DNA from: Pristiophorus japonicus
Lineage: Eukaryota
Length of the DNA stretch: 64,000 nt
Direction of reading: 5' to 3'
NCBI RefSeq assembly: GCF_044704955.1
Contig: NC_091995.1
Span: forward strand, 16,182,001-16,246,000
Shown here piece by piece: positions 1 through 58,432 of the stretch. The position numbers and the translations under genes were made by a program. The notes beneath the pieces were generated by a model. That model did no database searches, had not been told where the DNA came from, and saw only the letters and a program-made list of their open reading frames with translations. Position 1 is the stretch's first letter, and every line of letters begins with the position of its first letter.

Positions 1-220
1 GCTCAGTGGACACGGGGTGAACCAAATGGGTACAAACTGGATAATAGTCCATTTTATGGAGACCGGCTGGAGAAATCGGACAAAGATTCATTTTTCAACA
101 ACAGAGTATTTATTATTATCTCCAACTTGATTGAGAAAGACTCAGACACCTATTACTGCTGGATAAACTTAATGCGAGAAGGGCAGAGTTGCGGAAATGG
201 CACCAAATTGGAAGTGACGC
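1..220 (+). CDS. V-set (V-J joined) Ig exon of NKp30/CD28-family-like receptor, copy 1 (5' part outside window)
   Basis: Reads AQWTRGEPNG...IIISNLIEKDSDTYYCWINLMREGQSCGNGTKLEVT. Has the C-strand Trp, DxxxYxC and the J-like GxGT motif. Ends C|GTAAGT (phase 1). Identical to 49996-50215. Confidence 0.9.
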
Positions 221-350
221 GTAAGTTGCAACTTATTGGTTGATAAAGCATGTGTTTTCATTTTCTATTCAAACAGAGCAGGATGAGTTTTGGTCCAATT
301 TTCCGGACTTGTGATAGGCTGGCTGACCCCAGCAATCTGGGCGCCGATTA

Positions 351-780
351 GTGTCAGCTATGGCTCAGTGGTGGCACCCTCGCTTGTGAGCCAGACGTCA
401 TGGGTTAAAGTCCCACTCCAAGGACTTGAGCGCAAAAGTCTAGGCTGACGCTCCAGTGCGGTGCTGCGCTGTCGGACGTGCCGTCATTCGGATGAGACGT
501 TTGCCCTCTCAGGTGGGTGCAAAAGATCGTTTGGCTCTATTTGGAAGAAGAGTTAATCCCCGGTGTCCTGGGGTCAATATTTATCCCTCAATCAACATCA
601 CTAAAAACAGATTACTTGGCCATTATCACATTGCTATTTGTGGGAGCTTGCTGTGCGCAAATTGGTTCCAAGTTTCCCAGTTTACAACAATGACTACACT
701 CCAAAATAGTACTTCATTGGCTGCAAAATGCCTTGGGACGTCTCGTGGTCGCTAAATAAATTCAAGTCTTTCTTTCTTTC
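351..780 (+). mobile_element. tRNA-derived SINE with L2-type tail
   Basis: A-box TGGCTCAGTGG, B-box-like GGTTAAAGTCC, tail ending in (TCTT)n. The same family recurs at 23850, 30070, 33345 and 35219. Confidence 0.75.
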
Positions 781-944
781 ACGGGGATGGGAATACAATC
801 TCAAGTCGCTCCTCTTTGCCATACTCAAATCTTTTTTCTCCTGGAAGGTGCTTGTATGTTTGTGAGTATCAGAGGATAAAATTGGAAGCAAAACGGGTGG
901 ATTAGCATTGGCTGGCTATTATACCACACACCAGATATTCTGTT

Positions 945-1430
945 CTATTGAAGAATGATTCCTGGGATGGGGGGTTGTCCTATGAGGTGAAATTGAGGAG
1001 ACTAGGCCTATCTTCTCTAGAGCTTAGAAGAATGAGAGGTGATCTCATTGAAACATACAACATTCTCACAGGGCTTGACCGGATTGATGCAAGGAGGATG
1101 TTACTTCTGGCTGGGGAATCCGGAACCAGCGGTCACAGCCTCAGAATAAGTGGTCGACCATTTAGGACTGAGATGAGGAGAAATTTATTCACTCAGAGGG
1201 TGGTGAATCTTTGGAATTCTCTACCACAGAAAGCTGTGGAAGCTCCGTTGTTGAGTACATTTAAGAAAGAGATCAATAGATGTTTTGGATATTAAGCGAA
1301 TCAAGGGATATGGGGATAATGCAGGAAAGTGGAGTTGAGGTAGAAGATTTGTCGTGATCTTATTGAATGGTGGAGCAGGCTTGAGGGGCCTAATGGCCGA
1401 ATCCTGCTCCTACCTCTTATCTTCTTATGT
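945..1430 (+). mobile_element. CR1 LINE 3' fragment
   Basis: LGLSSLELRRMRGDLIETY...FTQRVVNLWNSLP (CR1 ORF2 C-terminus) plus CR1 3' UTR. Confidence 0.9.
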
Positions 1431-1527
1431 CCTTATGAAATAAATATCATCTGAACCTGTAACGGGCTCCCAATACCGCTTGTGTTGCCAACCTGCTCAT
1501 GCCCAAGGTGCCTACTTTGATTTAATT

Positions 1528-1855
1528 TGTTTCTGGGATGTGGGCATCACTGGCATGGCCGACATTTATTACCCATCCATAATTGCCCTTGAACAGGTGG
1601 TGGTGAGCCGCCTTCTTGAACCGCTGCAGTCTGCGTGGCAAATGTACTCCCCCACAGTGCTGTTAGGGAGGGAGTTCCAAGATTTTGACCCAGCGCCGAT
1701 GAAGGAAAGGCCGATATATTTTCAAGTCAGGATGGTGTGTGTGACTTGGAGGTGATCTTGGAGGTGGTGGTGTCCCCATGCGTCTGCTGCCCTTGTCCTT
1801 CGAGGCGGCAGAGGTCGTGGGTTTGGGAAGTGCTGCTGAAGAAGCTTGGCAGAGC
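1528..1855 (-). mobile_element. LINE 3' end fragment (second CR1-group family)
   Basis: GGGATGTGGGCATC...GCCTTCTTGAAC block recurs at about 12335, 21800, 40000 and 47605. Family assignment is from memory. Confidence 0.55.
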
Positions 1856-2196
1856 AGGATTGTGATGCTTTTTAGAGTCAAATAGCCAAACTCACCTTCT
1901 GGGCTTAACTTTGAATAATCACCATTAAATTGATATCTTGGGCGCTCCAAGTGAAGAAAAAATCCATGAAGATTCCATGTAATGAGAACATGGGACAAAA
2001 TCAATAAAGGTTGAGGAAAGCGTCTTGACATTTTCTTTATTATTGTTGATGCACCAACAGTAACACAATAGAAGAGCAAATTTTCTGTTTCCATTGTAAT
2101 ACAATCATGTTATTTGTTTTAAGGCAAACAAAACCATTTTCCCTCAGCGTCTTCCTATTTAGATATAAAAATATTGACTTCAACTCCTTATTTCAG

Positions 2197-2316
2197 GCAG
2201 AAAGCAGGAAAAAAAGAAAGGAGATATTATCCTGACACTTGTACTGGGAGGTGTGCTGGTATTGCTGGGGATAACCATCATGATTCTTACAATTCGACTG
2301 ATCAGGCAAAACAAAG
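2197..2316 (+). CDS. Stalk + transmembrane exon, copy 1
   Basis: tttcag| acceptor, phase 1 continues from the V exon: (R)RKQEKKKGDIILTLVLGGVLVLLGITIMILTIRLIRQNK, then G|gtctgt. The hydrophobic core has no charged residue. Confidence 0.88.
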
Positions 2317-2694
2317 GTCTGTATCTTTACAAAACACACTGGTAACCTGTTTAAATATTACACTTTCACTATAGTGCAGGGGAATTACTCTGGCCACTGT
2401 AAATAACAATATAGCAAATGCTTTTGTGGAGCAAGTCAGCATTTCTACTGCAATCGGAATCACATTATTATGAACAACTATTTTAGGGCACCCATAGGAT
2501 TTCACCAGAAATAATAATAGGAGAAAATGTCCATACTCCATTATGATATCGGTGCACATAGCATCCAGAATACCTTCCCTTCCTATCTATGCATTTGTGT
2601 GTCAAAGGTCAATTTTACGAAACTTTAATAAGGAATAGCATTATAAAGTCATTATCCTACAACAATAATATTAATTTTGTTCTTTACCTTTCAG

Positions 2695-2713
2695 TTATCC
2701 TGAGGCTGAAAAG
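2695..2713 (+). CDS. Cytoplasmic micro-exon (19 nt), copy 1
   Basis: Pyrimidine tract + tcag|, AG|gtacag donor. Gives VILRLK in frame. Confidence 0.6.
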
Positions 2714-2804
2714 GTACAGGAAAAGTTAAATCCTAAAGAATTAATGATTATTCATAATATAATGTACTTAATTTTAAATTCAAATATCATCTCACTTATT
2801 ACAG

Positions 2805-2833
2805 AAATCGCAGTGAAGCCAATGCAACATATG
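2805..2833 (+). CDS. Cytoplasmic micro-exon (29 nt), copy 1
   Basis: ttattacag| ... G|gtaagg. Reads RNRSEANATY after the 19-nt exon, or EIAVKPMQHM if that exon is skipped. Confidence 0.7.
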
Positions 2834-3009
2834 GTAAGGAAAATTTAATTGCATTCACGTGACGTAATTTACATTGATCAATACAAAAACACATTTGCAG
2901 ATTATTTTAATCAAAATCATTTCATTTCCAATCAGGTTCTACTGATATGTGTGTGTGCGTATGCGTGTATCTGTATATGTATGTGCATATGTTTGTATGT
3001 GTCTGAGTT

Positions 3010-3255
3010 AAAGAGTGTTTGAAGACCAGGCCCTCAAAACTGTCATCAAGCTCATGGTCTACAGGCCATAGTAATACCCGCCCTGTTGTATGGCTCAGAG
3101 ACGTGGACCATGTACAGCAGACACCTCAAGTCGCTGGAGAAATACCCCAAAGATGTCTCCGCAAGATCCGACAAATCCCCTGGGAGGACAGATGCAGCAA
3201 CATTAGCGCCCTCATCCACACCAACATCCCCAGCATTGAAGCACTGACCAAACTT
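3010..3255 (+). mobile_element. RTE LINE fragment
   Basis: Degenerate RVFEDQAL..KLMVY..LYGSETWTMYSRHLKSLEKY, typical of the RTE ORF C-terminal region. Confidence 0.7.
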
Positions 3256-6200
3256 GAAGGAGGAACTGATGGAAATCCTTATTAGTCGGGAAATTGTGTT
3301 GGGGAAATTGATGCGATTGAAGGCTGATAAATCGCCAGGGCCTGATGGACTGCATCCCAGAGTACTTAAGGAGGTGGCCTTGGAAATAGCGGATGCACTG
3401 ACAGTCATTTTCCAACATTCCATTGACTCTGGATCAGTTCCTATCGAGTGGAGGGTAGCCAATGTAACCCCACTTTTTAAAAAAGGAGGGTGAGAGAAAA
3501 CAGAGAATTATAGACTGGTCAGCCTGACATCGGTAGTGGGTAAAATGATGGAATCAATTATTAAGGATGTCATAGCAGCGCATTTGGAAAGAGGTGACAT
3601 GATAGGTCCAAGTCAGCATGGATTTGTGAAAGGGAAATCATGCTTGACAAATCTTCTGGAATTTTTTGAGGATGTTTCCAGTAAAGTGGACAAGGGGGAA
3701 CCAGTTGATGTGGTGTATTTGGACTTTCAGAAAGCTTTCGACAAGGTCCCACACAAGAGATTAATGTGCAAAGTTAAAGCACATGGGATTGGGGGTAGTG
3801 TGCTGGCGTGGATTGAGAACTGGTTGGCAGACAGGAAGCAAAGAGTAGGAGTAAATGGGTACTTTTCAGAATGGCAGGCAGTGACTAGTGGTGTACCGCA
3901 AGGTTCTGTGCTGGGGCCTCAGCTATTTACATTGTACATTAATATTTAGACGAAGGGATTAAATGTAGTATCTCCAAATTTGCGGATGACACTAAGTTGG
4001 GTGGCAGTGTGAGCTGCGAGAAGGATGCTATGAGGCTACTGAGTGACTTGGATAGGTTAGGTGAGTGGGCAACTGCATGGCAGATGAAGTATAATGTGGA
4101 TAAATGTAAGGTTATCCACTTTGGTGGTAAAAACAGAGAGACAGACTATTATCTGAATGGTGACAGATTAGGAAAAGGGGAGGTGCAACGAGACCTGGGT
4201 GTCATGGTACATCAGTCATTGAAGGTTGGCATGCAGGTACAGCAGGCGGTTAAGAAAGCAAATGGCATGTTGGCCTTCATAGCGAGGGGATTTGAGTACA
4301 GGGGCAGGGAGGTGTTACTACAGTTGTACAGGGCCTTGGTGAGGCCACACCTGGAGTATTGTGTACAATTTTGGTCTCCTAACTTGACATTCTTGCTATT
4401 GAGGGAGTGCAGCGAAGGTTCACCAGACTGATTCCCAGGATGGCGGGACTGACATATCAAGAAAGACTGGGTCAACTGGGCTTGTGTTCACTGGAGTTCA
4501 GAAAAATGAGAGGGGATCTCATAGAAACATATAAAATTCTGACGGGTTTAGACAGGTTAGATGCAGGAAGAATGTTCCCAATGTTGAGGAAGTCCAGAAC
4601 CAGGGGTCACAGTCTAAGGATAAGGGGTAAGCCATTTAGGACCGAGATGAGGAGAAACTTCTTCACCCGGGGAGGAGTTAAACTAATGTGGTAGGGGGAT
4701 GGGAACCAATGCAGGGAGACAGAGGGAAACAAAAAGGAGACAAAAGCAAAACACAGAAAGGAGATGAGTAAAAGTGGAGGGCAGAGAAACCCAAGGCAAA
4801 AAACAAAAAGGGCCACTGAATGTAAAGGGGCTGCAGGAGGGGTCAAAACTAAAAATCATGGATTAAAAACTAGTATTAAAACACTCTACCTAAACGCACG
4901 CAGCATTCGAAATAAAGTAAATGAGTTGACGGCACAAATCATTACAAATGGGCATGATTTGGTGGCCATTACAGAAACGTGGTTGCAGGGTGGCCAAGAC
5001 TGGGAATTAAACATACAGGGGTATCTGACGATTCAGAAAGATAGACAAGAAGGGAAAGGAGGTGGGGTAGCTCTGTTAATAAAGGATGCTATCAGGGCAG
5101 TTGTGAGAGACGATATTGGCTCTGATGAACAAAATGTTGAATCATTGTGCGTGGAGATTAGAGATAGTAAGGGGAAAAAGTCACTGGTGGGCGTAGTTTA
5201 TAGGCCCCCAAATAATAACTTCATGGTGGGGCGGGCAATAATCAAGGAAATAATGGAGGCATGTGAAAAAGGAACGGCAGTAATCATGGGGGATTTTAAC
5301 CTACATATCGATTGGTCTGATCAAATCGCACGAGGTAGCCTGGAGGAGGAATTCATAGAATGCATACGGGATTGTTTCTTACAACAGTATGTTACAGAAC
5401 CTACAAGGGAGCAAGCTATCTTAGATCTGGTCCTGTGTAATGTGGCAGGAATAATAAATGATCTCCTAGTAAAAGATCCTCTCGGAATGAATCATCACAG
5501 TATGGTTGAATTTGTAATACAGATTGAGGGTGAGGAAATAGTGTCTGAAACGAGCATACTATGCTTAAACAAAGGGGACTACAGTAGGATGAGGGCAGAG
5601 TTGGCTAAAGTAGACTGGAAACACAGACTAAACGGTGGCACAATTGAGGAACAGTGGAGGACTTTTAAGGAGCTCTTTCATAGTGCTCAACAAAAATATA
5701 TTCCAATGAAAAAGAAGGGTGGTAAGAGAAGGGATAACCAGCCGTGGATAACCAGGGAAATTAAGGAGAGCATCAAATTAAAAACCAATGCGTATAAGGT
5801 GGCCAAGGTTAGTGGGAAAATAGAAGATTGGGAAAATTTTAAACGACAGCAAAGAATGAATAAGAAAGCAATAAAGAAAGGAAAGATAGATTACGAAGGT
5901 AAACTTGCGCAAAATATAAAAACGGATAGTAAAAGCTTTTACAGATATATAAAACGGAAAAGAGTGACTAAAGTAAATGTTGGTCCCTTAGAAGATGAGA
6001 AGAGGGATTTAATAATGGGAAATGTGGAAATGGCTGAGACCTTAAACAATTATTTTGCTTTGGTCTTCACAGTGGAAGACACAGAAACCATGCCAGAAAT
6101 TGCTGGTCACAGGAATGTGGGAAGGGAGGACCTGGAGACAATGACTATCACTAGGGGGTTAGTGCTGGACTGGCTAATGGGACTCAAGGTAGACAAGTCC

Positions 6201-8005
6201 CCTGGTCCTGATGAAATGCATCCCAGGGTATTAAAAGAGATGGCAGAAGTTATAGCAGATGCATTCGTTATAATCTACCAAAATTCTCTGGACTCTGGGG
6301 AGGTACCAGCGGATTGGAAAGCAGCTAATGTAACGCCTCTGTTTAAAAAAGGGGGCAGACAAAAGGCAGGTAACTATAGGCCGGTTAGTTTAACATCTGT
6401 AGTGGGGAAAATGCTTGAAACTATCATTAAGGAAGAAATAGCGAGACATCGAAATAGGAATAGTGAAATCAAGCAGACGCAGCATGGATTCATGAAGGGG
6501 AAATCATATTTAACTAATTTACTGGAATTCTTTGAGGATATAACGAGCATGGTGGATAGAGGTGTACCGATGGATGTGGTGTATTTAGATTTTCAAACGG
6601 CATTCGATAATGTGCCATACAAAAGGTTACTGCAGAAGATAAAGGTACGCAGGGTCAGAGGAAATGTATTAGCATGGATAGAGAATTGGCTGGCTAACAG
6701 AAAGCAGAGTCGGGATAAATGGGTCCTTTTCAGGTTGGAAATTGGTGGTTAGTGGTGTGCCACAGGGATCGGTGCTGGGACCACAACTGTTTACAATATA
6801 CATAGATGACCTGGAAGAGGGGACAGAGTGTAGTGTAACAAAATTTGCAGATGACACAAAGATTAGTGGGAAAGCGGGTTGTGTAGAGGACACAGAGAGG
6901 CTGCAAAGAGATTTAGATAGGTTTAGAGAATGGGCTAAGGTTTGGCAGATGGAATACAATGTTGGAAAGTGTGAGGTCATCCACCTTGGGAAAAAATACA
7001 AAAAAAGTGAATACTATTTGAATGGGGAGAAATTACAACATGCTGCGGTGCAGAGGGACCTGAGGGTCCTTGTGCATGAATCCCAAAAAGTTAGTTTGCA
7101 GGTGCAGCAGGTAATCAGGAAGGTGAATGGAATGTTGGCCTTCATTGCGAGAGGGATGGAGTACAAAAGCAGGGAGGTCCTTCTGCAACTGTATAGGGTA
7201 TTGGTGAGACCGCACCTGGAGTACTGCGTGCAGTTTTGGTCACCTTACTTAAGGAAGGACATGCTAGCTTTGGAGGGGGTACAGAGACAATTCACTAGGT
7301 TGATTCCGGAGATGAGGGGGTTACCTTATGATGATAGATTGAGTAGACTGGGTCTTTACTCGTTGGAGTTCAGAAGGATGAGGGGTGATCTTATAGAAAC
7401 ATTTAAAATAATGAAAGGGATAGACAAGATAGAGGCAGACAGGTTGTTTCCACTGGTCGGGGAGACTAGAATTAGGGGGCACAGCCTCAAAATACGGGGG
7501 AGCCAATTTAAAACCGAGTTGAGAAGTAATTTCTTCTCCCAGAGGGTTGTGAATCTGTGGAATTCTCTGCCCAAGGAAGCAGTTGAGGCTAGCTCATTGA
7601 ATGTATTCAAGTCACAGATCGATAGATTTTTAACTAATAAGGGAATTAAGGGTTATGGGGAGCGGGCGGGTAAGTGGAGCTGAGTCGACGGCCAGATCAG
7701 CCATGATCTTGTTGAATGGCGGAGCAGGCTCGAGGGGCTAGATGGCCTACTCCTGTTCCTATTCTTATGTTCAGAGAGTGGTGAATATGTGGAATTCTCT
7801 ACCACAGAAAGTTGTTTAGGCCAATTCACTAAATATATTCAAAAAGGAGTTAGATGTAGTCTTTACTACTAGGGGGATCAAGGGGTATGGCGAGAAAGCA
7901 GGAATGGGGTACTGAAATTGCTTTTTCAGCCATGAACTCATTGAATGGCGGTGCAGGCTCGAAGGGCCGAATGGCCTACTCCTGCACCTATTTTCTATGT
8001 TTCTA
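3256..8005 (+). mobile_element. 5'-truncated CR1 (host; 3256-4668 and 7772-8005) interrupted by a younger CR1
   Basis: RT motifs KSPGPDG, YLDFQKAFDKV, GVPQGSVLGP, FADD. AACTTCTTCACC at 4656-4667 rejoins CAGAGAGTGGTGAAT at 7772. Confidence 0.9.
4669..7771 (+). mobile_element. CR1 LINE with near-complete ORF2 (APE endonuclease + RT), frameshifted near 6705
   Basis: ORF 4764-6752 (YLNARS, ITETW, GDFN, LDLVL, KSPGPD) and ORF 6742-7683 (GVPQGSVLGP, KFADD). Has the 3' UTR and TTCTTATG tail. Confidence 0.95.
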
Positions 8006-8380
8006 ATATGTATGTATGTATGTTTTGCATTTGTGTGTAAGTGCGTATGTCTGTATGTGTGTTTATGTATATGTGTATGCACGTGTGTGTTTATATATAT
8101 GTGTGTGTATGTGCATATGTGTGTGTTTATGAGTGTGTATGTGTGTTTATGTATATGTGGATGTGCGTGTGTGTACATGCGTATGTGTGTGTATGTTTTA
8201 TGTATGTGTATATAAGTATGTGTGTGTGTATTTATGAATATGTGTGTTTATGTTTATGTATGTGTATGCGTGTGTGTATGTGTGTATGCATGTGTATTTA
8301 CATACATGTGTATGCGTGTGTGTGTATGTGGTTTGTGTATGTGTGTTTATGTATGTGTGTATGCGTGTGTGTGTGTGTGT
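8005..8380. repeat. Degenerate (GT)/(TATG) microsatellite
   Basis: Seen directly. ORFs here are low-complexity artefacts. Confidence 0.95.
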
Positions 8381-8436
8381 TGCATTGTGTAATTCTGAGA
8401 TATTCTCTATCATCGTCTCTCCTCTCATTTTCACAG

Positions 8437-8462
8437 ATCCAGCCAATCTACAGCCAACACAA
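8437..8462 (+). CDS. Cytoplasmic micro-exon (26 nt), copy 1
   Basis: ctcctctcattttcacag| ... CAA|gtaaga. Reads DPANLQPTQ (phase 1 entry) or IQPIYSQH (phase 0 entry). Confidence 0.72.
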
Positions 8463-8625
8463 GTAAGAACTATCGGATGATGAAATGTTTTCTGTGTTCA
8501 ATGACAGCTGGTCCTGGTGTACAATAAGGCTCCTGTAATTGGCCAAACACTTAACTCTGTTCTCTATATACTTTCAATATCCTATATGTGCTTGTGAAGG
8601 ATTTCCCCTGTTATGTATGTTTTAG

Positions 8626-8662
8626 GGATGTGCTTATACTTGGCAGTAAAATGAAACCAGAG
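8626..8662 (+). CDS. Candidate cytoplasmic micro-exon (37 nt); has TAA at 8647-8649 in one frame
   Basis: tgttttag| ... GAG|gtaatg. Phase 0 gives GCAYTWQ*NETR; phase 2 gives DVLILGSKMKPE. Confidence 0.45.
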
Positions 8663-8791
8663 GTAATGACAATCAAAAGTAGTGTTTAAGGGGACGCAGT
8701 GCACCAGCATTATTCAACTCCAGCCCCGACTGATGGGCTGAAAGGTTCCTCTTTCCGTTGATTGCAACCGGTCATATCTTCCCAATGGACA

Positions 8792-9011
8792 TTTTTTTTT
8801 TTTTTTTTTTAATTCGTAGCCAATCGTTCCAATTCTTTGTCAAATCACAAACGCCAGAGGTCACCTTGCACATGCCAAGGATCACTCTGCGCCAATGCTC
8901 TTAGCCAAAAGGCCTAGAGCCACTGCACCGTTCCTGGAAGTACTGCAATACCAGGTTCGTGCCATGGAGGTGGATGGGTCAGGTCCCCCACACACCTCCG
9001 TGGAGGTGGAT
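8792..9011 (-). mobile_element. Poly(A)-tailed retroposon containing U2 snRNA-derived segments
   Basis: 19-nt T run at 8792-8810 and CCAATGGACA direct repeat at 8782-8791 and 9012-9021. Minus strand has ACCTGGTATTGCAGTACTTCCAGGAACGGTGCA (U2 3' stem-loop IV) followed by GGCCTTTTGGCTAAGAGCA (U2 5' stem-loop I). Confidence 0.8.
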
Positions 9012-9290
9012 CCAATGGACATTGAACCACAGCACCAAATCTACCCCAAAAAAGGACAATTGGCATTAAATTGGGGACGCGTTTATTTGTACTGCCAAAG
9101 TGGCCAGCATGCTCCACCCTTTGTGTCTGATTGGTCCCCTTGGAGGATAAGCCACACCCTGATGTTTCACAGGAATGTGTAACTGGAACCGCCCATCCCA
9201 AGGTCTCGCTGACTTTGCAAATTGTAACTCGATCTACTTTGACTTCCTGAGCGACAGAGGACAGAGCTCCCCAGAAGACAGCAAGGGCCA

Positions 9291-9470
9291 ACCAAAGTGC
9301 CTTACCCCAGTCCAAATGCATGGCTGGCCCAGCCAAATTGCCTTACCCCAGTCTAAATGTATGCCTCTGCCAGCCAAAGTGCCTTACCCAAGTCCAAATG
9401 CATGCCTTCCCCAGCCAAACTCCTGTACCCAGTCCAAGTGCATGCCTGCCTCAGCCAAAAGTGCCTTCCT
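9291..9470. repeat. ~40-bp minisatellite, about 4.5 copies
   Basis: Unit approximately CAGCCAAAGTGCCTTACCCCAGTCCAAATGCATGCCT. Confidence 0.85.
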
Positions 9471-9639
9471 ATGCCTCCCCCCCACCCCCCATCATAGATA
9501 TCATAGATATCATAGATGTGGAAGGCATTGTGTACGGATTGTTAACAGGTTTATTGGATATGAAGGGAATGGTGTCCACTCCAACTATGTCCCTTTTAGG
9601 GGATTGGAAGAACATGATCCATCTTTGACAAGTTCCCTC

Positions 9640-11090
9640 TCTCCCATCCGATTCCTCCCCCCCCCACCCCACCCACATCTCTCACTCTCCCCCCAGCCTC
9701 ACTCTCCCCGCCCCACCCCTCAGACTCTCTCTCTCTCCCCCCAGCCCAGGCTCTCTCTTTCTCTCTCCCCCCACCCCAGGCTCTCTCTCCCCCTGCCCAC
9801 CCCAGCCTCTCTCTCCCCGCCCCAACCCCCAAGCTCTCTCTGTCCCCCACCGCCCGCCCCCCCCAGCCTCTCTCTCCCCACCCCACCCCCCCCCCAAGCT
9901 CTCTCTCTCCCCCACCGACGCCCCCAGCCTCTCTCTCCCCACCCCACCTCCCAGGCTCTCTCTCTCTCACCCCCGCCTCTCTCACTCTCTCCCAAGCCCA
10001 ACCCAGGCTCACTCTCTCTCCCTCTCTCTCTGCCCCCCCCCCACCCCAGGCTCGCTCACTCTCCCCCCACCCCAGGCTCTTCCCCCCCTCCCCCCCCTCC
10101 ACAAGTTCTCTCTCTCCCCCCACCCTAGACTCCCTCTCTCTCCCTCCCCGCAATCTCTCTCTCTCTCCTCCCCCCCCCCCCGCAATCTCTCTCACTCTCT
10201 CTTCCCCACCAATCTCGCTCTCCCCCCCCCCAATCTCGCTCGCCTCTCCCCCCCAGTCTCCCTCTTCCTCTCCCAAATCTCTCTCTCTTCCTCCCCCCAA
10301 TCGCTCTTTCTCTCCCTCCCCAATCTCTCGCTCTCCCTCCCCAATCTCTCTCTCTCTCTCTCCCTCCCCACAATGTTGCTCTCTCTCTCCCTCCCCCAAT
10401 CTGTCTCTCTCCCTTCCTCCCCCCAATCTCTCTCTCCCTCCCCCAATCTCTCTCTCTCCCTCCCCCCAATCTCTCTTTCTCCCTCCCTCCCCCCAATCTC
10501 TCTCTTCCTCCCCCCAATCTCTCTCTTCCTCCCCCCAATCTCTCTCTCCCTCCCCAATTTCTCTCTCCCTCCCCCAATCTCTCTCTCTCTCCCTCCCCCC
10601 AATCTCTCTTTCTCCCTCCCTCCCCCAATCTCTCTCTCTCTCTCTCCCTCCCCACAATCTCTCTCTCCCTCCATCCAATCTCTCTCTCCCTCCCTCCCCC
10701 CAATCTCTCTCTCTTCCTCCCCCCCAATCTCTCTTTCCCTCTCTCCCCAATCTCTCTCTCCCTCCCCACAATGTCGCTCTGTCTCCCTCCCCCCAATCTC
10801 GCTCGCGCGCTCTCTCTTTCCCTCCCCCAATCTCTCTCCCTCCCCCAATCTCTCTCTCTCCCTCCCTCCCCCCAATCTCTCTCTTCCTCCCCCCAATCTC
10901 TCTCTCCCTCCCCCTCCCCACAATCTCTCTCTCCCTCCATCCAATCTCTCTCTCTCTCCCTCCCCCCCAAATCTCTCTCTCTCTCTCTCTCCCTCCCCAC
11001 AATCTCTCTCTCCCTCCATCCAATCTCTCTCTCTCTCCCCCTCCTCCCAATCTCTCTCTCTCTTTCTCCCCGTCCCCCCGCCGCCGCCGC
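9640..11090. repeat. Polypyrimidine (CT-rich) satellite
   Basis: CCCCAG(G)CTCTCT units grading into CCCCAATCTCTCT units. Length differs in copy 2. Confidence 0.95.
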
Positions 11091-11552
11091 TCTCCCCCTT
11101 CCGCCGCTTAGGACTCGCGGCTCAGCGGGAGGCTCGGTCGGCGCTCGATCGAAGGAGCAGGCTCGCAGAGGAGCAGCAGCTCGGTCAGCTCGTGGAGCAA
11201 CAACGTGGTCGAACTGATCGCAGGATCCCACTGCCGGTTCGGGGCCCCACTGCTCTCCCCGCCCCAGCTTCTCTCTCTCCACCCTCACTCCCCCATCCTC
11301 TCTCCCGCCATTAGCCCCCTGCTGCCATCAGGCCCAGGCCGGCCGGGGGCGAAAAGAGCCTCAGGTCCTGTTTCTCTGCACCACGCGAATGGAATGACTC
11401 GGGCCGGGGGGAGAGCTTGACAGGTGGCGGGGCTTGTCATCTGTCGGTCAAAAAAGTGCAGTACGGGCACTGGTGGGATCAGGGCTGGACAGACCTGTCA
11501 AAAAAAGTGCATTCAAATAATTAGTCCCTTCAATTGGTCATCTCAATTTCAG

Positions 11553-11593
11553 CGTTTATAAGCTGTGAAAGTGGAAATGTTCAGACTCGGAGT
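11553..11593 (+). CDS. Candidate cytoplasmic micro-exon (41 nt), copy 1
   Basis: tctcaatttcag| ... AGT|gtaaga. Open only with phase 1 entry (xFISCESGNVQTRS) and exits in phase 0. Confidence 0.42.
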
Positions 11594-12774
11594 GTAAGAG
11601 TCTTTTTCTGAGCGTTTTGTGTAGGGGTATTGTACAAGCAGAGTAGAGGAAAATTCACCTTGCAGTCTATAATGTTATAGCTGACGCAGAAATACTGGAG
11701 GCCCACAATGGATAACATTCCATGCTTTTCTTCCCAGTACAAACATAACAATGTCTCATTCCAATTTCTCCTCCTGGTATAACAACCATCTTCACTTCTT
11801 TAAGTCCAAGGGGCACACAACCGGATAAGCCGTCCATTCCTAGATTTGGCTTGCCACATTAATCTCTATCTGGCTTTGCTCACCTGTGGAGAAACCGTCC
11901 ATTACTATTGCATCGTCCTGGAAGTTAACGGTAGCTGCAGGCTCCTCTTCTCTACTGCCTTAAACAACTTTGCCCACCACCCCCTCTCTCTCATTTCTAA
12001 CAAGTGCGAGGAACTCATGTAGTTATTCCTCATGTCCATCTGTTGAGCTGTCTCGTTGCTTCTGTCTTCCCCTTGTTTACTCAGCCAAATGTCCCCCAGC
12101 CCTTTCACCATCATTTCCCTGGAACCTGGCCTCTCACTAGTTTCTGCCCTTTTCCCCACACCCCGTCCAAAATTATCTCATCCACGAGATCTTTTTTTCT
12201 GTTCTCTTGACCCTCCCTTTCCCACCAATCTCCTGATCAGCCAACAGCCATTTTTGTGAATGGCTTAATTTACATCGTTGCCTTTTAAACCCACTGCCAT
12301 TACCCGTTTTTATGATCACAACTTCTTTAATCACAGGATGTGGGCATCGTTGGCAAGGCCAGCATTTATTGTCCATTCCTCATTGCCCTTGAGAAGGTGA
12401 TGGTGAGCCACCTTCTTGAATCGCTGCAGACCTATGTGGTGAAGGTGCTCCCACAGAGGTGTTAGGTAGGGTGTTCCGGGATTTTGGCTCAGCGATGATG
12501 AAGGAATGGCGATATATTTCAACGTCAGGATGGTGTGTAATTTGGAGGGGAACTAGGAGGGGTTTGTCTTCCCAACACCTGCTGCTCTTGTCCTTCTCGG
12601 TGGTAGAGATCACAGGTTTGGAAGATGCTGTTGAAAAAGCTTTGGTGAGTTGCTGCAGTGCATCTTTGATCTGTCTGTCCTATCCAGGTAATGTCCCATA
12701 TTGAACCTGCCTTTCCCTTCCAATGTCCTTAGAGTGCTGTTGCCTTACAGATATGTACCCACTTCCCTTCAGAT

Positions 12775-13100
12775 AAGGTTTCTGCCTCTGCCACAACACT
12801 GAAATGACACTGACCAAAGTCAGAAGTGACATTCTCTGCTACAGTGGCTATGGTATGTTATCTTTCCTGTAAACTTTGACTTGTCAATCACACGACCCTC
12901 CTCCAATGTCTCTTCTCTATTGCTCAATTCCCTGGCACTGTTCTTGCTCAGCTCTATGATAATGCATCTAATTTTAACCAGAGCATCTGCAGCAATGGCT
13001 TCTCTTTCCAGCCAATAGCTTGGGAGTCCCCAAAGTATCTATCCTTTGTTTCTTCGTCGAGTTGGCATCATCAAAGCTAGGCATTCAGCTTCCATATATA
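12775..13100 (+). mobile_element. Degenerate L2 LINE RT fragment
   Basis: Remnants of GF..H.TE..L.KV..DIL and GVPQ in shifted frames. Confidence 0.5.
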
Positions 13101-13104
13101 CGCC

Positions 13105-14090
13105 AATTAAGAAATAGGAGCAGAAGTCGCCCATTTGGCCCCTCGAGCCTGCTCCGCTATTCAATAAGATCATGGCTGATCTGATCTTGGCTTCAAATCC
13201 ACTTCCCTGCCCACTCCCCAGAACCCTTGACTCTCTTATCATTCAAAAATCTGACTATCTCCACCTTAAATATATTCAATGTACCAGCACCCACAGCTCT
13301 CTGGGGTAGAGAATTCCAAAGATTCATCACCCTCTGAGAGAAGACAACCCTCTTCATCTCCATTTTAGATGAGCGACCCCTTATTCTGAAACTATACCCC
13401 TTATTTCTAGATTCGCCCACGAGGGGCAGCATCCTCTCTGCATCTAACCTGTCAAGCCCCCTCATGATTCTTATATGTTTCAATAAGATCAACTCTCATT
13501 CTTCTAAAATGCAATTTGTATGGGCCCAACCTGCTCAACTTTTTTCATAAAACAACCTCTTCATCTCAGGAATCAACCTCATGAACCTTCTCTGAACAGC
13601 CTCCAATGCAAATATATACCTCCTTAAATAAGGAGAACAAAATTGTATGCAGTACTCCAGGTGTGGTCTCACCAACGTTCTGTACAGTTGTAGCAGGACT
13701 TCCCTACTTTTAGACTCCATCCCCTTTGAAATAAAGGCCAACATTCCATTTGCCTTCCTGATTACTTGCTGCACCTGCATCCTAACTTTATGTGTTTCAT
13801 GCACAAGGACCCCCAGATCCCTCTGTACTGCAGCATTTTGTAATCTCTACCCATTTAAATAATAATTTGCTTTTGTATTTTTCCTATCAAAGTGGGTAAG
13901 CTCACACTTTCCCACATTATACTCAGTCTTCCAATTTTTTGTCCACTCACTTAGCTGTCTCTATCCCTTTGTAGATTATTTGCATCCTCCTCGCAACTTG
14001 CTTTCCCACCTATTTTGTACTATCAGCAAATTTGTCTACATTACACTCGGTCCCTTCATCCATGTCATTAGAATAGACTGTAAATATTTG
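13105..14090 (-). mobile_element. CR1 LINE 3' fragment
   Basis: Minus-strand ORFs QVQQVIRKANGMLAFI...LVRPHLEYC and SQRVMNLWNSLP. Confidence 0.9.
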
Positions 14091-14326
14091 AGTAAAAAGT
14101 AATAGCTTTACTTATACACCATCTATCTTGACCCCTCCTTGTGCTGTCAGACTGTATCTCCGACTTCTAGTCTTGAATCTGCGACCCTTTATCTGATTGC
14201 ACATCGCTCCAGTGCTTTGGAATGTATTTCTGCTTTACGGGTGCTATAAATAGGCAAACTGGTATTATTGTATTTATACGCATTGGAAATTAAAACTTGT
14301 GCTAACCTGATTGTACTCATTATTAG

Positions 14327-14455
14327 GTACATTCCAATTGTTGCAGTAATGAAGCAGTTTCCCTGCATTACGCCAAAGTGGACACAAAGCAAAAGGGGAG
14401 GATGAGGAGAATGAATATGGAGGAACATGATGTGGAGTACGACACCATCAAATGA
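14327..14455 (+). CDS. Terminal cytoplasmic exon with two ITIM-type motifs, copy 1
   Basis: Branch-point-like CTAAC at 14302, tattag| acceptor. Reads VHSNCCSNEAVSLHYAKVDTKQKGRMRRMNMEEHDVEYDTIK*. LHYAKV at 14363-14380, VEYDTI at 14432-14449. An alternative acceptor at 14346 enters the same frame in phase 2. Confidence 0.82.
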   Translation, partial: VHSNCCSNEAVSLHYAKVDTKQKGRMRRMNMEEHDVEYDTIK

Positions 14456-49876: not shown

Positions 49877-50215
49877 CAGGTGGGACGGATACCACGGTCT
49901 ACCAGTTACCTCCCTTTATAACTGCAACAGAAGGGGAGTCGGTGAAACTGAACTGTGCCGTGGCTACTGCAGGAAACCTATCTTCGATGGGCTCAGCTCA
50001 GTGGACACGGGGTGAACCAAATGGGTACAAACTGGATAATAGTCCATTTTATGGAGACCGGCTGGAGAAATCGGACAAAGATTCATTTTTCAACAACAGA
50101 GTATTTATTATTATCTCCAACTTGATTGAGAAAGACTCAGACACCTATTACTGCTGGATAAACTTAATGCGAGAAGGGCAGAGTTGCGGAAATGGCACCA
50201 AATTGGAAGTGACGC
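49877..50215 (+). CDS. Complete V-set (V-J joined) Ig exon, NKp30/CD28-family-like, copy 2
   Basis: tttcag|cag| phase 1 acceptors; VYQLP..ATEGESVKLNC..W..RL..IIISNLIEKDSDTYYC..GNGTKLEVT; C|gtaagt. Confidence 0.93.
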
Positions 50216-52191
50216 GTAAGTTGCAACTTATTGGTTGATAAAGCATGTGTTTTCATTTTCTATTCAAACAGAGCAGGATGAGTTTTGGTCCAATTTTCCG
50301 GACTTGTGATAGGCTGGCTGACCCCAGCAATCTGGGCGCCGATTAGTGTCAGCTATGGCTCAGTGGTAGCACCCTCGCTTGTGAGCCAGACGTCATGGGT
50401 TAAAGTCCCACTCCAAGGACTTGAGCGCAAAAATCTAGGCTGACGCTCCAGTGCGGTGCTGCGCTGTCGGACGTGCCGTCATTCGGATGAGACGTTTGCC
50501 CTCTCAGGTGGGTGCAAAAGATCGAATGGCTCTATTTGGAAGAAGAGTTAATCCCCGGTGTCCTGGGGTCAATATTTATCCCTCAATCAACATAACTAAA
50601 AACAGATTACTTGGCCATTATCACATTGCTATTTGTGGGAGCTTGCTGTGCGCAAATTGGTTCCAAGTTTCCCAGTTTACAAAAATGACTACACTCCAAA
50701 ATAGTACTTCATTGGCTGCAAAATGCCTTGGGACGTCTCGTGGTCGCTAAATAAATTCAAGTCTTTCTTTCTTTCACGGGGATGGGAATACAATCTCAAG
50801 TCGCTCCTCTTTGCCATACTCAAATCTTTTTTCTCCTGGAAGGTGCTTGTATGTTTGTGAGTATCAGAGGATAAAATTGGAAGCAAAACGGGTGGATTAG
50901 CATTGGCTGGCTATTATACCACACACCAGATATTCTGTTCTATTGAAGAATGATTCCTGGGATGGGGGGTTGTCCTATGAGGTGAAATTGAGGAGACTAG
51001 GCCTATCTTCTCTAGAGCTTAGAAGAATGAGAGGTGATCTCATTGAAACATACAACATTCTCACAGGGCTTGACCGGATTGATGCAAGGAGGATGTTACT
51101 TCTGGCTGGGGAATCCGGAACCAGCGGTCACAGCCTCAGAATAAGTGGTCGACCATTTAGGACTGAGATGAGGAGAAATTTATTCACTCAGAGGGTGGTG
51201 AATCTTTGGAATTCTCTACCACAGAAAGCTGTGGAAGCTCCGTTGTTGAGTACATTTAAGAAAGAGATCAATAGATGTTTTGGATATTAAGCGAATCAAG
51301 GGATATGGGGATAATGCAGGAAAGTGGAGTTGAGGTAGAAGATTTGTCGTGATCTTATTGAATGGTGGAGCAGGCTTGAGGGGCCTAATGGCCGAATCCT
51401 GCTCCTACCTCTTATCTTCTTATGTCCTTATGAAATAAATATCATCTGAACCTGTAACGGGCTCCCAATACTGCTTGTGTTGCCAACCTGCTCATGCCCA
51501 AGGTGCCTACTTTGATTTAATTTGTTTCTGGGATGTGGGCATCACTGGCATGGCCGACATTTATTACCCATCCATAATTGCCCTTGAACAGGTGGTGGTG
51601 AGCCGCCTTCTTGAACCGCTGCAGTCTGCGTGGCAAATGTACTCCCCCACAGTGCTGTTAGGGAGGGAGTTCCAAGATTTTGACCCAGCGCCGATGAAGG
51701 AAAGGCCGATATATTTTCAAGTCAGGATGGTGTGTGTGACTTGGAGGTGATCTTGGAGGTGGTGGTGTCCCCATGCGTCTGCTGCCCTTGTCCTTCGAGG
51801 CGGCAGAGGTCGTGGGTTTGGGAAGTGCTGCTGAAGAAGCTTGGCAGAGCAGGATTGTGATGCTTTTTAGAGTCAAATAGCCAAACTCACCTTCTGGGCT
51901 TAACTTTGAATAATCGCCATTAAATTGATATCTTGGGCGCTCCAAGTGAAGAAAAAATCCATGAAGATTCCATGTAATGAGAACATGGGACAAAATCAAT
52001 AAAGGTTGAGGAAAGCGTCTTGACATTTTCTTTATTATTGTTGATGCACCAACAGTAGCACAATAGAAGAGCAAATTTTCTGTTTCCATTGTAATACAAT
52101 CATGTTATTTGTTTTAAGGCAAACAAAACCATTTTCCCTCAGCGTCTTCCTATTTAGATATAAAAATATTGACTTCAACTCCTTATTTCAG

Positions 52192-52311
52192 GCAGAAAGC
52201 AGGAAAAAAAGAAAGGAGATATTATCCTGACACTTGTACTGGGAGGTGTGCTGGTATTGCTGGGGATAACCATCATGATTCTTACAATTCGACTGATCAG
52301 GCAAAACAAAG
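52192..52311 (+). CDS. Stalk + TM exon, copy 2
   Basis: Same as 2197-2316. Confidence 0.88.
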
Positions 52312-52689
52312 GTCTGTATCTTTACAAAACACACTGGTAACCTGTTTAAATATTACACTTTCACTATAGTGCAGGGGAATTACTCTGGCCACTGTAAATA
52401 ACAATATAGCAAATGCTTTTGTGGAGCAAGTCAGCATTTCTACTGCAATCGGAATCACATTATTATGAACAACTATTTTAGGGCACCCATAGGATTTCAC
52501 CAGAAATAATAATAGGAGAAAATGTCCATACTCCATTATGATATCGGTGCACATAGCATCCAGAATACCTTCCCTTCCTATCTATGCATTTGTGTGTCAA
52601 AGGTCAATTTTACGAAACTTTAATAAGGAATAGCATTATAAAGTCATTATCCTACAACAATAATATTAATTTTGTTCTTTTCCTTTCAG

Positions 52690-52708
52690 TTATCCTGAGG
52701 CTGAAAAG
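52690..52708 (+). CDS. 19-nt micro-exon, copy 2
   Basis: Same as 2695-2713; one A/T difference in the upstream pyrimidine tract. Confidence 0.6.
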
Positions 52709-52799
52709 GTACAGGAAAAGTTAAATCCTAAAGAATTAATGATTATTCATAATATAATGTACTTAATTTTAAATTCAAATATCATCTCACTTATTACAG

Positions 52800-52828
52800 A
52801 AATCGCAGTGAAGCCAATGCAACATATG
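52800..52828 (+). CDS. 29-nt micro-exon, copy 2
   Basis: Same as 2805-2833. Confidence 0.7.
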
Positions 52829-54663
52829 GTAAGGAAAATTTAATTGCATTCACATGACGTAATTTACATTGATCAATACAAAAACACATTTGCAGATTAT
52901 TTTAATCAAAATCATTTCATTTCCAATCAGGTTCTACTGATATGTGTGTGTGCGTATGCGTGTATCTGTATATGTATGTGCATATGTTTGTATGTGTCTG
53001 AGGAAAAGAGTGTTTGAAGACCAGGCCCTCAAAACTGTCATCAAGCTCATGGTCTACAGGCCATAGTAATACCCGCCCTCTTGTATGGCTCAGAGACGTG
53101 ACCATGTACAGCAGACACCTCAAGTCGCTGGAAAAATACCCCAAAGATGTCTCCGCAAGATCCGACAAATCCCCTGGGAGGACAGATGCAGCAACATTAG
53201 CGCCCTCATCCACACCAACATCCCCAGCATTGAAGCACTGACCAAACTTGAAGGAGGAACTGATGGAAATCCTTATTAGTCGGGAAATTGAGTTGGGGAA
53301 ATTGATGCGATTGAAGGCTGATAAATCGCCAGGGCCTGATGGACTGCATCCCAGAGTACTTAAGGAGGTGGCCTTGGAAATAGCGGATGCACTGACAGTC
53401 ATTTTCCAACATTCCATTGACTCTGGATCAGTTCCTATCGAGTGGAGGGTAGCCAATGTAACCCCACTTTTTAAAAAAGGAGGGTGAGAGAAAACAGAGA
53501 ATTATAGACTGGTCAGCCTGACATCGGTAGTGGGTAAAATGATGGAATCAATTAGTAAGGATGTCATAGCAGCGCATTTGGAAAGAGGTGACATGACAGG
53601 TCCAAGTCAGCATGGATTTGTGAAAGGGAAATCATGCTTGACAAATCTTCTGGAATTTTTTGAGGATGTTTCCAGTAAAGTGGACAAGGGGGAACCAGTT
53701 GATGTGGTGTATTTGGACTTTCAGAAAGCTTTCGACAAGGTCCCACACAAGAGATTAATGTGCAAAGTTAAAGCACATGGGATTGGGGGTAGTGTGCTGG
53801 CGTGGATTGAGAACTGGTTGGCAGACAGGAAGCAAAGAGTAGGAGTAAATGGGTACTTTTCAGAATGGCAGGCAGTGACTAGTGGTGTACCGCAAGGTTC
53901 TGTGCTGGGGCCTCAGCTATTTACATTGTACATTAATGATTTAGACGAAGGGATTAAATGTAGTATCTCCAAATTTGCGGATGACACTAAGTTGGGTGGC
54001 AGTGTGAGCTGCGAGAAGGATGCTATGAGGCTACTGAGTGACTTGGATAGGTTAGGTGAGTGGGCAACTGCATGGCAGATGAAGTATAATGTGGATAAAT
54101 GTAAGGTTATCCACTTTGGTGGTAAAAACAGAGAGACAGACTATTATCTGAATGGTGACAGATTAGGAAAAGGGGAGGTGCAACGAGACCTGGGTGTCAT
54201 GGTACATCAGTCATTGAAGGTTGGCATGCAGGTACAGCAGGCGGTTAAGAAAGCAAATGGCATGTTGGCCTTCATAGCGAGGGGATTTGAGTACAGGGGC
54301 AGGGAGGTGTTACTACAGTTGTACAGGGCCTTGGTGAGGCCACACCTGGAGTATTGTGTACAATTTTGGTCTCCTAACTTGACATTCTTGCTATTGAGGG
54401 AGTGCAGCGAAGGTTCACCAGACTGATTCCCAGGATGGCGGGACTGACATATCAAGAAAGACTGGGTCAACTGGGCTTGTGTTCACTGGAGTTCAGAAAA
54501 ATGAGAGGGGATCTCATAGAAACATATAAAATTCTGACGGGTTTAGACAGGTTAGATGCAGGAAGAATGTTCCCAATGTTGAGGAAGTCCAGAACCAGGG
54601 GTCACAGTCTAAGGATAAGGGGTAAGCCATTTAGGACCGAGATGAGGAGAAACTTCTTCACCC

Positions 54664-57600: not shown

Positions 57601-57767
57601 ATTCAAGTCACAGATCGATAGATTTTTAACTAATAAGGGAATTAAGGGTTATGGGGAGCGGGCGGGTAAGTGGAGCTGAGTCGACGGCCAGATCAGCCAT
57701 GATCTTGTTGAATGGCGGAGCAGGCTCGAGGGGCTAGATGGCCTACTCCTGTTCCTATTCTTATGTT
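54664..57767 (+). mobile_element. Nested CR1 with near-complete ORF2, copy 2
   Basis: ORF 54759-56747; shares the frameshift of copy 1 and has an extra one near 57035. Confidence 0.95.
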
Positions 57768-58432
57768 CAGAGAGTGGTGAATATGTGGAATTCTCTACCA
57801 CAGAAAGTTGTTGAGGCCAATTCACTCAATATATTCAAAAAGGAGTTAGATGTAGTCTGTACTACTAGGGGGATCAAGGGGTATGGCGAGAAAGCAGGAA
57901 TGGGGTACTGAAATTGCTTTTTCAGCCATGAACTCATTGAATGGCGGTGCAGGCTCGAAGGGCCGAAGGGCCGATTCCTGCACCTATTTTCTATGTTTCT
58001 AATATGTATGTATGTATGTTTTGCATTTGTGTGTAAGTGCGTATGTCTGTATGTGTGTTTATGTATATGTGTATGCACGTGTGTGTTTATATATATGTGT
58101 GTGTATGTGCATATGTGTGTGTTTATGAGTGTGTATGTGTACTTATGTATATGTGGATGTGCGTGTGTGTACATGCGTATGTGTGTGTATGTTTTATGTA
58201 TGTGTATATAAGTATGTGTGTGTATTTATGAATATGTGTGATTATGTTTATGTATGTGTATGCGTGTGTGTATGTGTGTATGCATGTGTATTTACATACA
58301 TGTGTATGCGTGTGTGTGTATGTGGTTTGTGTATGTGTGTTTATGTATGTGTGTATGCGTGTGTGTGTGTGTGTGTTGCATTGTGTAATTCTGAGATATT
58401 CTCTATCATCGTCTCTCCTCTCATTTTCACAG

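Follow-up and report, generated by a model that had tools for sequence, protein, structure and literature searches.

A probable NCR3 (NKp30)-family gene with an ITIM-type tail in a tandem repeat of the shark Pristiophorus japonicus

NKp30 and its described shark relatives

Human NKp30 is an activating receptor with an arginine in or at its membrane helix that signals through CD3-zeta or FcR-gamma. In sharks, NCR3 (NKp30) is reportedly linked to the MHC and is said to form tandem multi-copy clusters. As citations in PMC12272517 and PMC10450919 indicate, a paper by Kinlein et al. (2021, Immunogenetics 73:333) is devoted to the shark family, and a passage of the former, a review, ascribes an ITIM to the human isoform NKp30C.

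The window, that is, the whole 64,000-nucleotide stretch of Pristiophorus japonicus DNA analyzed here, is best explained overall by a shark NCR3-family gene with seven coding exons and an ITIM-type tail, lying in a ~50-kb tandem repeat, a reading that we consider probable. Its best relative among 1.84 billion representatives searched was nurse-shark NCR3, QTT61901.1 (P0001; E 2.3e-37, 66% V identity). The two have in common a leader, a single V-J domain, a short basic stalk, an uncharged helix, a ..QNK-ILRLKR.. juxtamembrane segment, and a tail that ends in VEYxTI plus one residue, with total lengths of 238 aa (nurse shark) and ~239 aa. The window gene differs in keeping tyrosine 1 of the tail, in its more diverged V domain, in a cysteine before GNGT, and in its tandem duplication.

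Ortholog-type proteins of 237-287 aa, with the same helix and tail, were found in Chiloscyllium, Heterodontus, Mustelus, Scyliorhinus, and Heptranchias. Specifically, RefSeq models named 'NCR3-like' or 'uncharacterized' from Heterodontus francisci (P0153), Heptranchias perlo (P0149), Mustelus asterias (P0154), Scyliorhinus canicula (P0156), and Chiloscyllium plagiosum (P0152) had collinear exons and two tyrosine sites (..YAKV.. and ..EYATI.) as in the window gene, with motif position -2 variable. Six other sharks from four orders have a counterpart that agrees in exon order, helix, and tail, one of these being the deposited nurse-shark NCR3. Among predicted isoforms, catshark X2 skips the TM exon and Heptranchias X2 (P0002) has its last exon in another frame.

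Exon model, membrane helix, and tail motifs

All six exons of copy 1 (Table 1) have AG acceptor and GT donor borders and share one frame, with splice phases 1, 1, 2, 1, and 0 and a TGA stop at 14453-14455. The initial annotation had joined these exons in the ITIM frame, and borders, phases, and stop were confirmed, the local translation being the same as the reading it had quoted. The copy-1 V exon terminates in a J-like G strand, GNGTKLEV, in phase 1. The exon peptides were collinear and non-overlapping on full-length proteins from six other sharks (tblastn and exon-by-exon alignment), the three micro-exons included, which places the exon chain above chance level. In the micro-exons, ILRLK was identical, N.S..NATY similar, and PANLQP.TQ nearly the same as in the catshark protein. 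The acceptor of the last exon reads tcattattag/GT, and the ortholog alignment of this exon begins at its first codon (VHSN); an alternative acceptor at 14347 would yield a tail-less product.

The complete model comprises a leader exon, a germline-joined V-J exon, a stalk and TM exon, micro-exons of 19, 29, and 26 nt, and the last exon. It spans ~19 kb and predicts a type I membrane protein. The leader and the full V exon come from the second copy and, like the tandem repeat itself, go beyond the initial annotation. In tblastn, the leader exon had weak N-terminal matches to the proteins of Mustelus and Scyliorhinus (E 0.17-0.26), and the complete V exon has a NAGNAG acceptor (cag/cag at 49874-49879). 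Taken jointly, it is very likely that the gene belongs to the shark NCR3 family, in the subtype of QTT61901.1, and that the exon model is correct.

Table 1. Features of the two gene copies and the repeat, in window coordinates.
Feature	Position	Strand	Evidence or remark
Copy 1 V-J exon, 3' 220 nt	1..220	+	First 119 nt precede window; equals 49996-50215
Copy 1 stalk and TM exon, 120 nt, phases 1/1	2197..2316	+	tblastn to six shark NCR3 proteins, exon alignment
Copy 1 19-nt micro-exon, (V)ILRLK(R)	2695..2713	+	AG/GT; ILRLK identical in orthologs
Copy 1 29-nt micro-exon, NRSEANATY	2805..2833	+	Splice borders, ortholog alignment
Copy 1 26-nt micro-exon, (D)PANLQPTQ	8437..8462	+	Splice borders, ortholog alignment
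Copy 1 terminal coding exon, 42 codons + TGA, both tyrosine motifs	14327..14455	+	Six orthologs aligned
ITIM-type motif 1, LHYAKV	14363..14380	+	Matches (I/V/L/S)xYxx(I/V/L)
ITIM-type motif 2, VEYDTI	14432..14449	+	Matches (I/V/L/S)xYxx(I/V/L); one residue ahead of stop
Copy 2 signal-peptide (leader) exon, MLFTRQLALMQLINFATCA + 1 nt	45068..45125	+	Donor G/GTGAGT, phase 1
Copy 2 V-J exon, full length 339 nt, phases 1/1	49877..50215	+	Pfam V-set E 2.7e-8
Second copy of ~50-kb repeat unit, matches 1-13895	49996..63998	+	97.7% identity with gaps
Copy 2 stalk and TM exon	52192..52311	+	Identical to copy 1
Copy 2 19-nt micro-exon	52690..52708	+	Identical to copy 1
Copy 2 29-nt micro-exon	52800..52828	+	Identical to copy 1
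Copy 2 26-nt micro-exon	58433..58458	+	Identical to copy 1

On the transcript side, a 189-nt contig of run X1 (kind of run not on record) covers 50083-50215 at a depth of 4.88 and stops exactly at the V donor, while its remaining 53 nt explain the sole depth in the TM-exon bin (4.88 x 53/200 = 1.29). This depth arithmetic indicates a transcript spliced from V to TM. The joints from the TM exon through the micro-exons to the last exon were not seen in any read or contig of P. japonicus; the frame of the tail is drawn from conservation only.

The membrane helix, IILTLVLGGVLVLLGITIMILTI, contains zero charged residues and is followed by RLIRQNK, the first arginine of which is a glycine in three of the five orthologs having the TM exon. 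Ortholog helices were likewise neutral, and the positive charge that is the hallmark of mammalian activating NKp30 is absent from the helix of the window gene. Both the neutral helix and the two ITIM-type motifs of the initial annotation were recovered, with LHYAKV and VEYDTI fitting the consensus and their tyrosines 23 residues apart, such that the sequence pattern of ITIM-bearing receptors, two motifs behind a neutral helix, is present. Across seven sharks, the tyrosine of motif 1 was retained in six and the motif was canonical in five, the exception at the tyrosine being the nurse shark (ICNAKV in place of LHYAKV). In motif 2, EYxTI was invariant (7/7), and position -2 was V in four and T, A, or D in one each, leaving four canonical. 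Heterodontus has Q or A at position -2, motif 2 of Mustelus has D there, and motif 2 of Chiloscyllium reads TEYATI.

Two motifs behind an uncharged helix are the usual layout of SHP-recruiting receptors such as KIR2DL, LAIR-1, PD-1, and the Siglecs. Like the window gene, these receptors, along with SIRP-alpha and PILR-alpha, pair an Ig ectodomain with a neutral helix and carry two tyrosine motifs ~20-30 residues apart, but they are of other families and functional analogs only; the window gene groups with NCR3. NCR3-like V-J receptors with two ITIMs were found in frogs (P0129, P0088, P0119), a newt (P0071), an electric ray (P0142), a bichir (P0057), and as another gene of Heterodontus (P0128), each combining one V-J domain and a TM helix with a motif pair (e.g., LHYAEI then VTYAPV). 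These receptors differ in their V domains (30-35% identity), which lie in other clades, and in the glutamate present in several of their helices; their tails are alike at the level of the motifs.

The gene model could be right and the tail tyrosines nonetheless serve as AP-2 clathrin-adaptor sorting signals that set how much receptor is at the surface, as in CTLA-4, or as a C-terminal ITSM recruiting SAP-like adaptors, possibly with an activating outcome, rather than as inhibitory docking sites. As YxxV and YxxI, the two motifs also fit a Yxx-hydrophobic signal; moreover, the ITIM-defining position -2 varies among sharks (Q, A, D), the Chiloscyllium motif has the ITSM form, and invariance is confined to EYxTI at the extreme C-terminus. 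The spacing of the motifs behind an uncharged helix, the canonical forms retained in five and four of the seven sharks, and the two canonical ITIMs in NCR3-like proteins of frogs, newt, ray, and bichir argue in the other direction, and we regard such a non-inhibitory tail as unlikely.

An inhibitory mechanism is what we lean toward for this NCR3-family receptor. By homology, the V domain would bind a B7H6-like ligand on another cell, upon which a Src-family kinase would phosphorylate both tail tyrosines. The tandem SH2 domains of SHP-1 or SHP-2 (or SHIP) would dock on the phosphotyrosines, and the docked phosphatases would damp activating signals in the lymphocyte bearing the receptor. Because its helix is without a charged residue, the receptor would not be expected to pair with CD3-zeta or FcR-gamma, unlike mammalian NKp30.

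The tandem repeat and its gene copies

The window holds 1.28 units of the repeat, and therefore one gene copy's 3' part followed by the 5' part of its neighbor. Its start falls inside the copy-1 V exon, and copy 2 would have its last exon near 64322, past the window end. Outside a simple repeat near 10-10.5 kb, the copies differ at 86 positions in ~13.4 kb (0.64% substitutions). The five exons common to both were identical, although 0 differences in 414 bases against ~2.6 expected is not significant. Beyond this, the window contained only two ORFs, for a zinc finger and a transposase, and a dead V exon, the dead paralog sitting inside the same ~50-kb repeat unit as the NCR3-family gene; no MHC gene was present within the window.

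Low divergence with identical exons would also be seen if the repeat were an assembly artifact, with two haplotypes of one gene placed in tandem, or if the copy analyzed here were a young, silent duplicate, so that one or both copies would be non-working. A single contig of low depth (4.9) touches the gene, its own protein was not found in the protein collection searched at lengths of 72-229 and 131-416 aa, and the repeat unit already carries a dead paralog. Set against these points are reading frames and splice sites that are intact in both copies, an X1 contig that looks spliced, and the tandem multi-copy NCR3 clusters reported for sharks, to judge by how Kinlein et al. 2021 is titled and cited. 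We judge it improbable, more so than a non-inhibitory tail, that the copies are an artifact or silent.

Family membership of the V domain and its implication

One exon of the gene encodes its only V-set domain, which is of the germline-joined V-J type (GxGTxLxV G strand), and G104, G106, T107, L109, and V111 were conserved at >= 90% over 62 relatives. In the V-domain tree, it was placed inside a nine-row shark NCR3 clade that included nurse-shark NCR3 (support 99/91), which was sister to a second shark NCR3-like group (support 95/85). To the RefSeq shark models in the clade, V identity was 59-64%, as against 36-38% for other shark NCR3-like groups.

When a profile of the shark proteins was compared with the PDB, four human NKp30 chains came first (E 7e-11 to 2e-10), ahead of the next match at 7e-9, and were followed by antibody V domains and SIRP; in the single-sequence search, NKp30 (5e-6) was level with scFvs. 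The predicted V fold (pLDDT 90) returned NKp30 chains at ranks 1, 2, and 4 (Z 16.3, with an rmsd of 1.9 across 107 residues and 28% identity), a lead over PILR-alpha and nanobodies that is within a tie, and V domains of SIRP and PILR-alpha were among the next-best sequence or fold matches. Human NKp30 (PDB 3NOI, 3PV6, 6YJP) is alike in its one V-J type domain and GNGT.L.V G strand; unlike it, the window gene combines an uncharged helix with an ITIM-type tail.

The NKp30-like V-J domain proposed in the initial annotation is thus upheld by both the profile search and the clade. It had assigned the gene to an NKp30/CD28 group, of which the NKp30 part stands and kinship to CD28 or CTLA-4 does not, as neither chain was among the best 60 PDB profile matches; the FG loop (..MREGQSCGNGT) is without MYPPPY, as had been noted, and the stalk (TRRKQEKKKGD) is without a cysteine for dimerization. 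The further proposal of a lineage-specific inhibitory receptor had to be given up, given that the V domain groups firmly with a deposited nurse-shark NCR3 of the same architecture and that NCR3-like models from Heterodontus, Heptranchias, Mustelus, Scyliorhinus, and Chiloscyllium fall in the same clade with the same tail. Such a firm grouping with a described ortholog of this architecture is what the initial annotation had itself named as refuting its proposal. A receptor of the NKp30/CD28 group with no described counterpart would accord with the longest end branch of the clade (0.4 vs 0.1-0.2) and with the extra cysteine ahead of GNGT, but the catshark protein has the same cysteine, CD28-type features are absent, and same-architecture counterparts exist in six sharks of four orders, making this reading very improbable. 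As the inhibitory-looking tail is common to those counterparts, the gene is, judged by its sequence, an ordinary new member of the already described NKp30 (NCR3) family and no new kind of receptor.

P. japonicus shares the conserved tail, ..YAKV..(~22 aa)..EYxTI following a neutral helix, with hexanchiform, heterodontiform, orectolobiform, and carcharhiniform sharks. Together with the two-ITIM NCR3-like genes of amphibians, a ray, and a bichir, this makes it conceivable, if doubtful, that ancestral NKp30 was inhibitory and that mammals have a derived form, activating and adaptor-coupled. If that were true, and not already stated in the shark NCR3 literature, the window gene and its tandem copy would be a further data point for such a reversal of sign.

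Structure and family of the gene

The window consists of vertebrate DNA with long introns carrying tRNA-derived SINEs and LINE fragments, and comparison of the window with itself revealed a tandem repeat, with a unit of about 50 kb, in which positions 1-13895 recur at 49996-63998. The left edge cuts the first copy of the gene, and its missing 5′ parts were supplied by the second. AG acceptors and GT donors were found at all six exon stretches proposed in the initial annotation (copy 1 in the table), their phases (1, 1, 2, 1, 0) were mutually compatible, and the local translation, closing with a TGA at 14453-14455, was identical to the reading quoted there. Exons were joined solely for this frame-check translation, while searches, fold prediction, and alignments were run per exon or with database proteins. 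The leader exon was located by homology to the N-termini of orthologues, its peptide resembling those of the Mustelus and Scyliorhinus proteins; a search over 36-49.9 kb for an ATG, a hydrophobic core, and a phase-1 GT donor missed it. Summed, the coding exons comprise 720 nt, that is, 239 codons plus a stop, spread over about 19 kb.

The V exon encodes a V-set domain (Pfam E 2.7e-8), and among 1.84 billion representative proteins searched its best match by far was a 238-aa nurse shark protein (E 2.3e-37, 66% identity) named by its source as natural cytotoxicity triggering receptor 3 (NCR3, or NKp30; QTT61901.1). This public protein has the same architecture as the window gene. With it as query, counterparts of 237-287 aa were recovered from Chiloscyllium plagiosum, Heterodontus francisci, Mustelus asterias, and Scyliorhinus canicula, and a cluster look-up supplied that of Heptranchias perlo; several of these orthologues bear the RefSeq label NCR3-like. 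All window exons, including micro-exons of 19, 29, and 26 nt, mapped successively and without overlap on the orthologues (tblastn and per-exon alignment), with alignment of the last exon starting at its first codon. A tree of 73 V domains built by maximum likelihood placed the window sequence inside a nine-row clade (support 99/91) together with the NCR3 proteins of sharks; the sister of this clade (95/85) is another set of NCR3-like genes from sharks. When the shark proteins were made into a profile and compared with solved structures, human NKp30 headed the list with four chains (E 7e-11 to 2e-10), the next hit being 100x weaker, and the predicted V domain (pLDDT 90) had human NKp30 as its top superposition (Z 16.3, rmsd 1.9, 107 residues), tied with PILR-alpha and nanobodies. 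Exon borders, phases, and homology establish the predicted gene model and its membership in the NCR3 family.

A CD28-like reading was rejected, since neither CD28 nor CTLA-4 was among the best 60 sequence matches and both MYPPPY, the absence of which had been recorded at the outset, and the stalk cysteine are lacking.

Several variations of the model were also seen. A second plausible acceptor (ttgttgcag/TAATGA, window 14341-14352) is present within the last exon, 20 nt from its start; its use would terminate the protein directly behind ..PANLQPTQ, with loss of both tyrosine motifs. Among the orthologues, the last exon is read in a different frame in the Heptranchias RefSeq isoform X2 (P0002), and the transmembrane (TM) exon is skipped in a catshark isoform (P0156). 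Immediately preceding GNGT, the FG loop carries an additional cysteine (window 50179-50181 and 184-186) that only the catshark orthologue shares, the other sharks having D, H, or S.

Membrane helix and cytoplasmic tail

The membrane helix of the window gene contains no charged residue, as the initial annotation had read it, and is neutral in the orthologues too; an arginine after the helix is glycine in three of them. Two motifs of ITIM type, as proposed there, were also confirmed: LHYAKV and VEYDTI, encoded by the last exon, each match (I/V/L/S)xYxx(I/V/L), their tyrosines lying 23 residues apart. Six of seven sharks retain the first tyrosine, nurse shark having lost it, and its motif is canonical in five of the seven. 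The C-terminal EYxTI is invariant in all seven; at position -2 of this second motif, four species have V, and one each has T (giving the ITSM form), A, or D. Comparison of the predicted proteins shows that a neutral helix with a double tyrosine tail is conserved across shark orders. The tail also contains an adjacent cysteine pair (SNCCSN).

By analogy with the well-known behavior of receptors with the same layout, we infer that the V domain would engage a ligand, by homology B7H6-like, after which both tail tyrosines would be phosphorylated and would recruit SHP-1/2 or SHIP, damping activation. Coupling to ITAM adaptors would not be expected, unlike in mammalian NKp30, because the helix carries no charged residue. 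That the tail motifs, with their variable position -2, are instead sorting or switch signals seems unlikely to us.

The tandem copies and the search for transcripts

Leaving aside a simple-repeat block near 10-10.5 kb, 86 substitutions separate the two copies over about 13.4 kb (0.64%). That block (window 10000-10500 and 60000-60500) has a G+C of 57-58% with strong C skew, and accounts for 71 of all 157 substitutions and 125 of all 164 indel columns in the comparison of the copies. The five exons common to both are identical in sequence, which does not demonstrate selection, as zero differences against about 2.6 expected in 414 bases is not significant.

Transcripts were sought in one public sequencing run, X1 (kind not on record), over window positions 49700-55699, on which its contigs comprised thousands derived from repeats and a single 189-nt contig, at depth 4.9, on the V exon. 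The latter spans 50083-50215, ending exactly at the V donor, and its remaining 53 nt are absent from the intron. The sole depth in the TM-exon bin was 1.29, equal to 4.88 x 53/200, from which the contig most likely runs on into 52192-52244. This depth arithmetic indirectly supports a spliced V-to-TM transcript, for that joint only, those to the micro-exons and the last exon being predicted from conservation. We regard it as quite improbable that the copy is silent or that the near-identical repeat is an assembly artefact. At 50171, the one difference in 133 nt, the contig has A and the window G, which could reflect allelic variation, the other copy as present in a different individual, or a closely related paralogue.

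Further NCR3-like remnants and two other reading frames lie within window 15788-35830 (table). The dead V exon has lost its frame at the WTRG region and carries a tRNA-derived SINE in place of its end before YYC; three short stretches similar to the J-like G strand and the stalk start (..ATKLETRRKW) sit within a local-repeat block at 28.9-34.8 kb. The transposase frame lies 1.3 kb downstream of the NCR3 stop. The DNA of the zinc-finger frame is internally repetitive, matching itself at spacings of 84, 168, 252 nt and so on (81-90% identity), and no obvious upstream exon was seen for it.

Features of the window, with coordinates
Feature	Position	Strand	Details
Copy 1 exons	1-220 (V, 3′ part), 2197-2316 (stalk and TM), 2695-2713, 2805-2833, 8437-8462, 14327-14455		
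Leader exon, copy 2	45068-45125	+	19-residue hydrophobic signal peptide; G/GTGAGT end; phase 1
Complete V exon, copy 2	49877-50215	+	339 nt; phase 1 at both ends; NAGNAG acceptor
Other copy 2 exons	52192-52311 (TM), 52690-52708, 52800-52828, 58433-58458		
Transposase ORF	15788-16909	-	Intact, 373 aa; DDE_Tnp_4 (Harbinger/HARBI1-type), Pfam E 1.9e-27
Zinc-finger ORF	27389-28207	+	272 aa; at least 8 C2H2 fingers
J-like G-strand and stalk-start scrap	29950-30030	-	
J-like G-strand and stalk-start scrap	32685-32768	+	
J-like G-strand and stalk-start scrap	33274-33351	-	
Assembly gap	34867-35123		After the dead V exon
Dead NCR3-like V exon	35556-35830	-	Good acceptor, tttatag/ACGG; V-domain start ..GESVPLSCAV..

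Place among known NCR3 genes

Receptors that combine a V-J domain with a pair of canonical ITIMs, some of them source-named NCR3-like, are also present in frogs, newt, electric ray, bichir, and a further Heterodontus gene, making the design widespread. The underlying observation was confirmed and the interpretation first attached to these exons partly supported: the NKp30-like part stood and the CD28-like part fell; a lineage-specific receptor, which we give next to no probability, is refuted by the orthologues in other sharks.

Same-species searches recovered no protein of the window gene at 131-416 aa (nurse shark query) or 72-229 aa (V-exon ORF query), ranges that longer or shorter models would escape, and the Pristiophorus japonicus proteins among the matches (P0005, P0012, and P0159) had just 33-47% identity to it; the gene appears to lack annotation in the searched protein collections. 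The abstract of the paper devoted to shark NCR3 reportedly describes eight divergent, MHC-linked subtypes. That paper, Kinlein et al. 2021, is cited in passages of PMC12272517 and PMC10450919. Full-text searches, in sources other than Kinlein et al. 2021 (PMC8273117), Flajnik et al. 2012 (PMC3709836), and Ohta & Flajnik 2015 (PMC4594805), found no paper on ITIMs in shark NCR3. The window gene is a further member of this known family, whose multi-copy nature in sharks is already published, and represents no new class of system.

Few NK-type receptors can be traced all the way from sharks to humans; NKp30 is one of them, and its V-J domain figures in arguments over how antigen receptors arose. 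In mammals the gene activates, whereas this shark subtype combines a neutral helix with a double tyrosine tail. With this locus, one shark NCR3 subtype gains a well-defined gene model, of use to annotation and comparative immunology.
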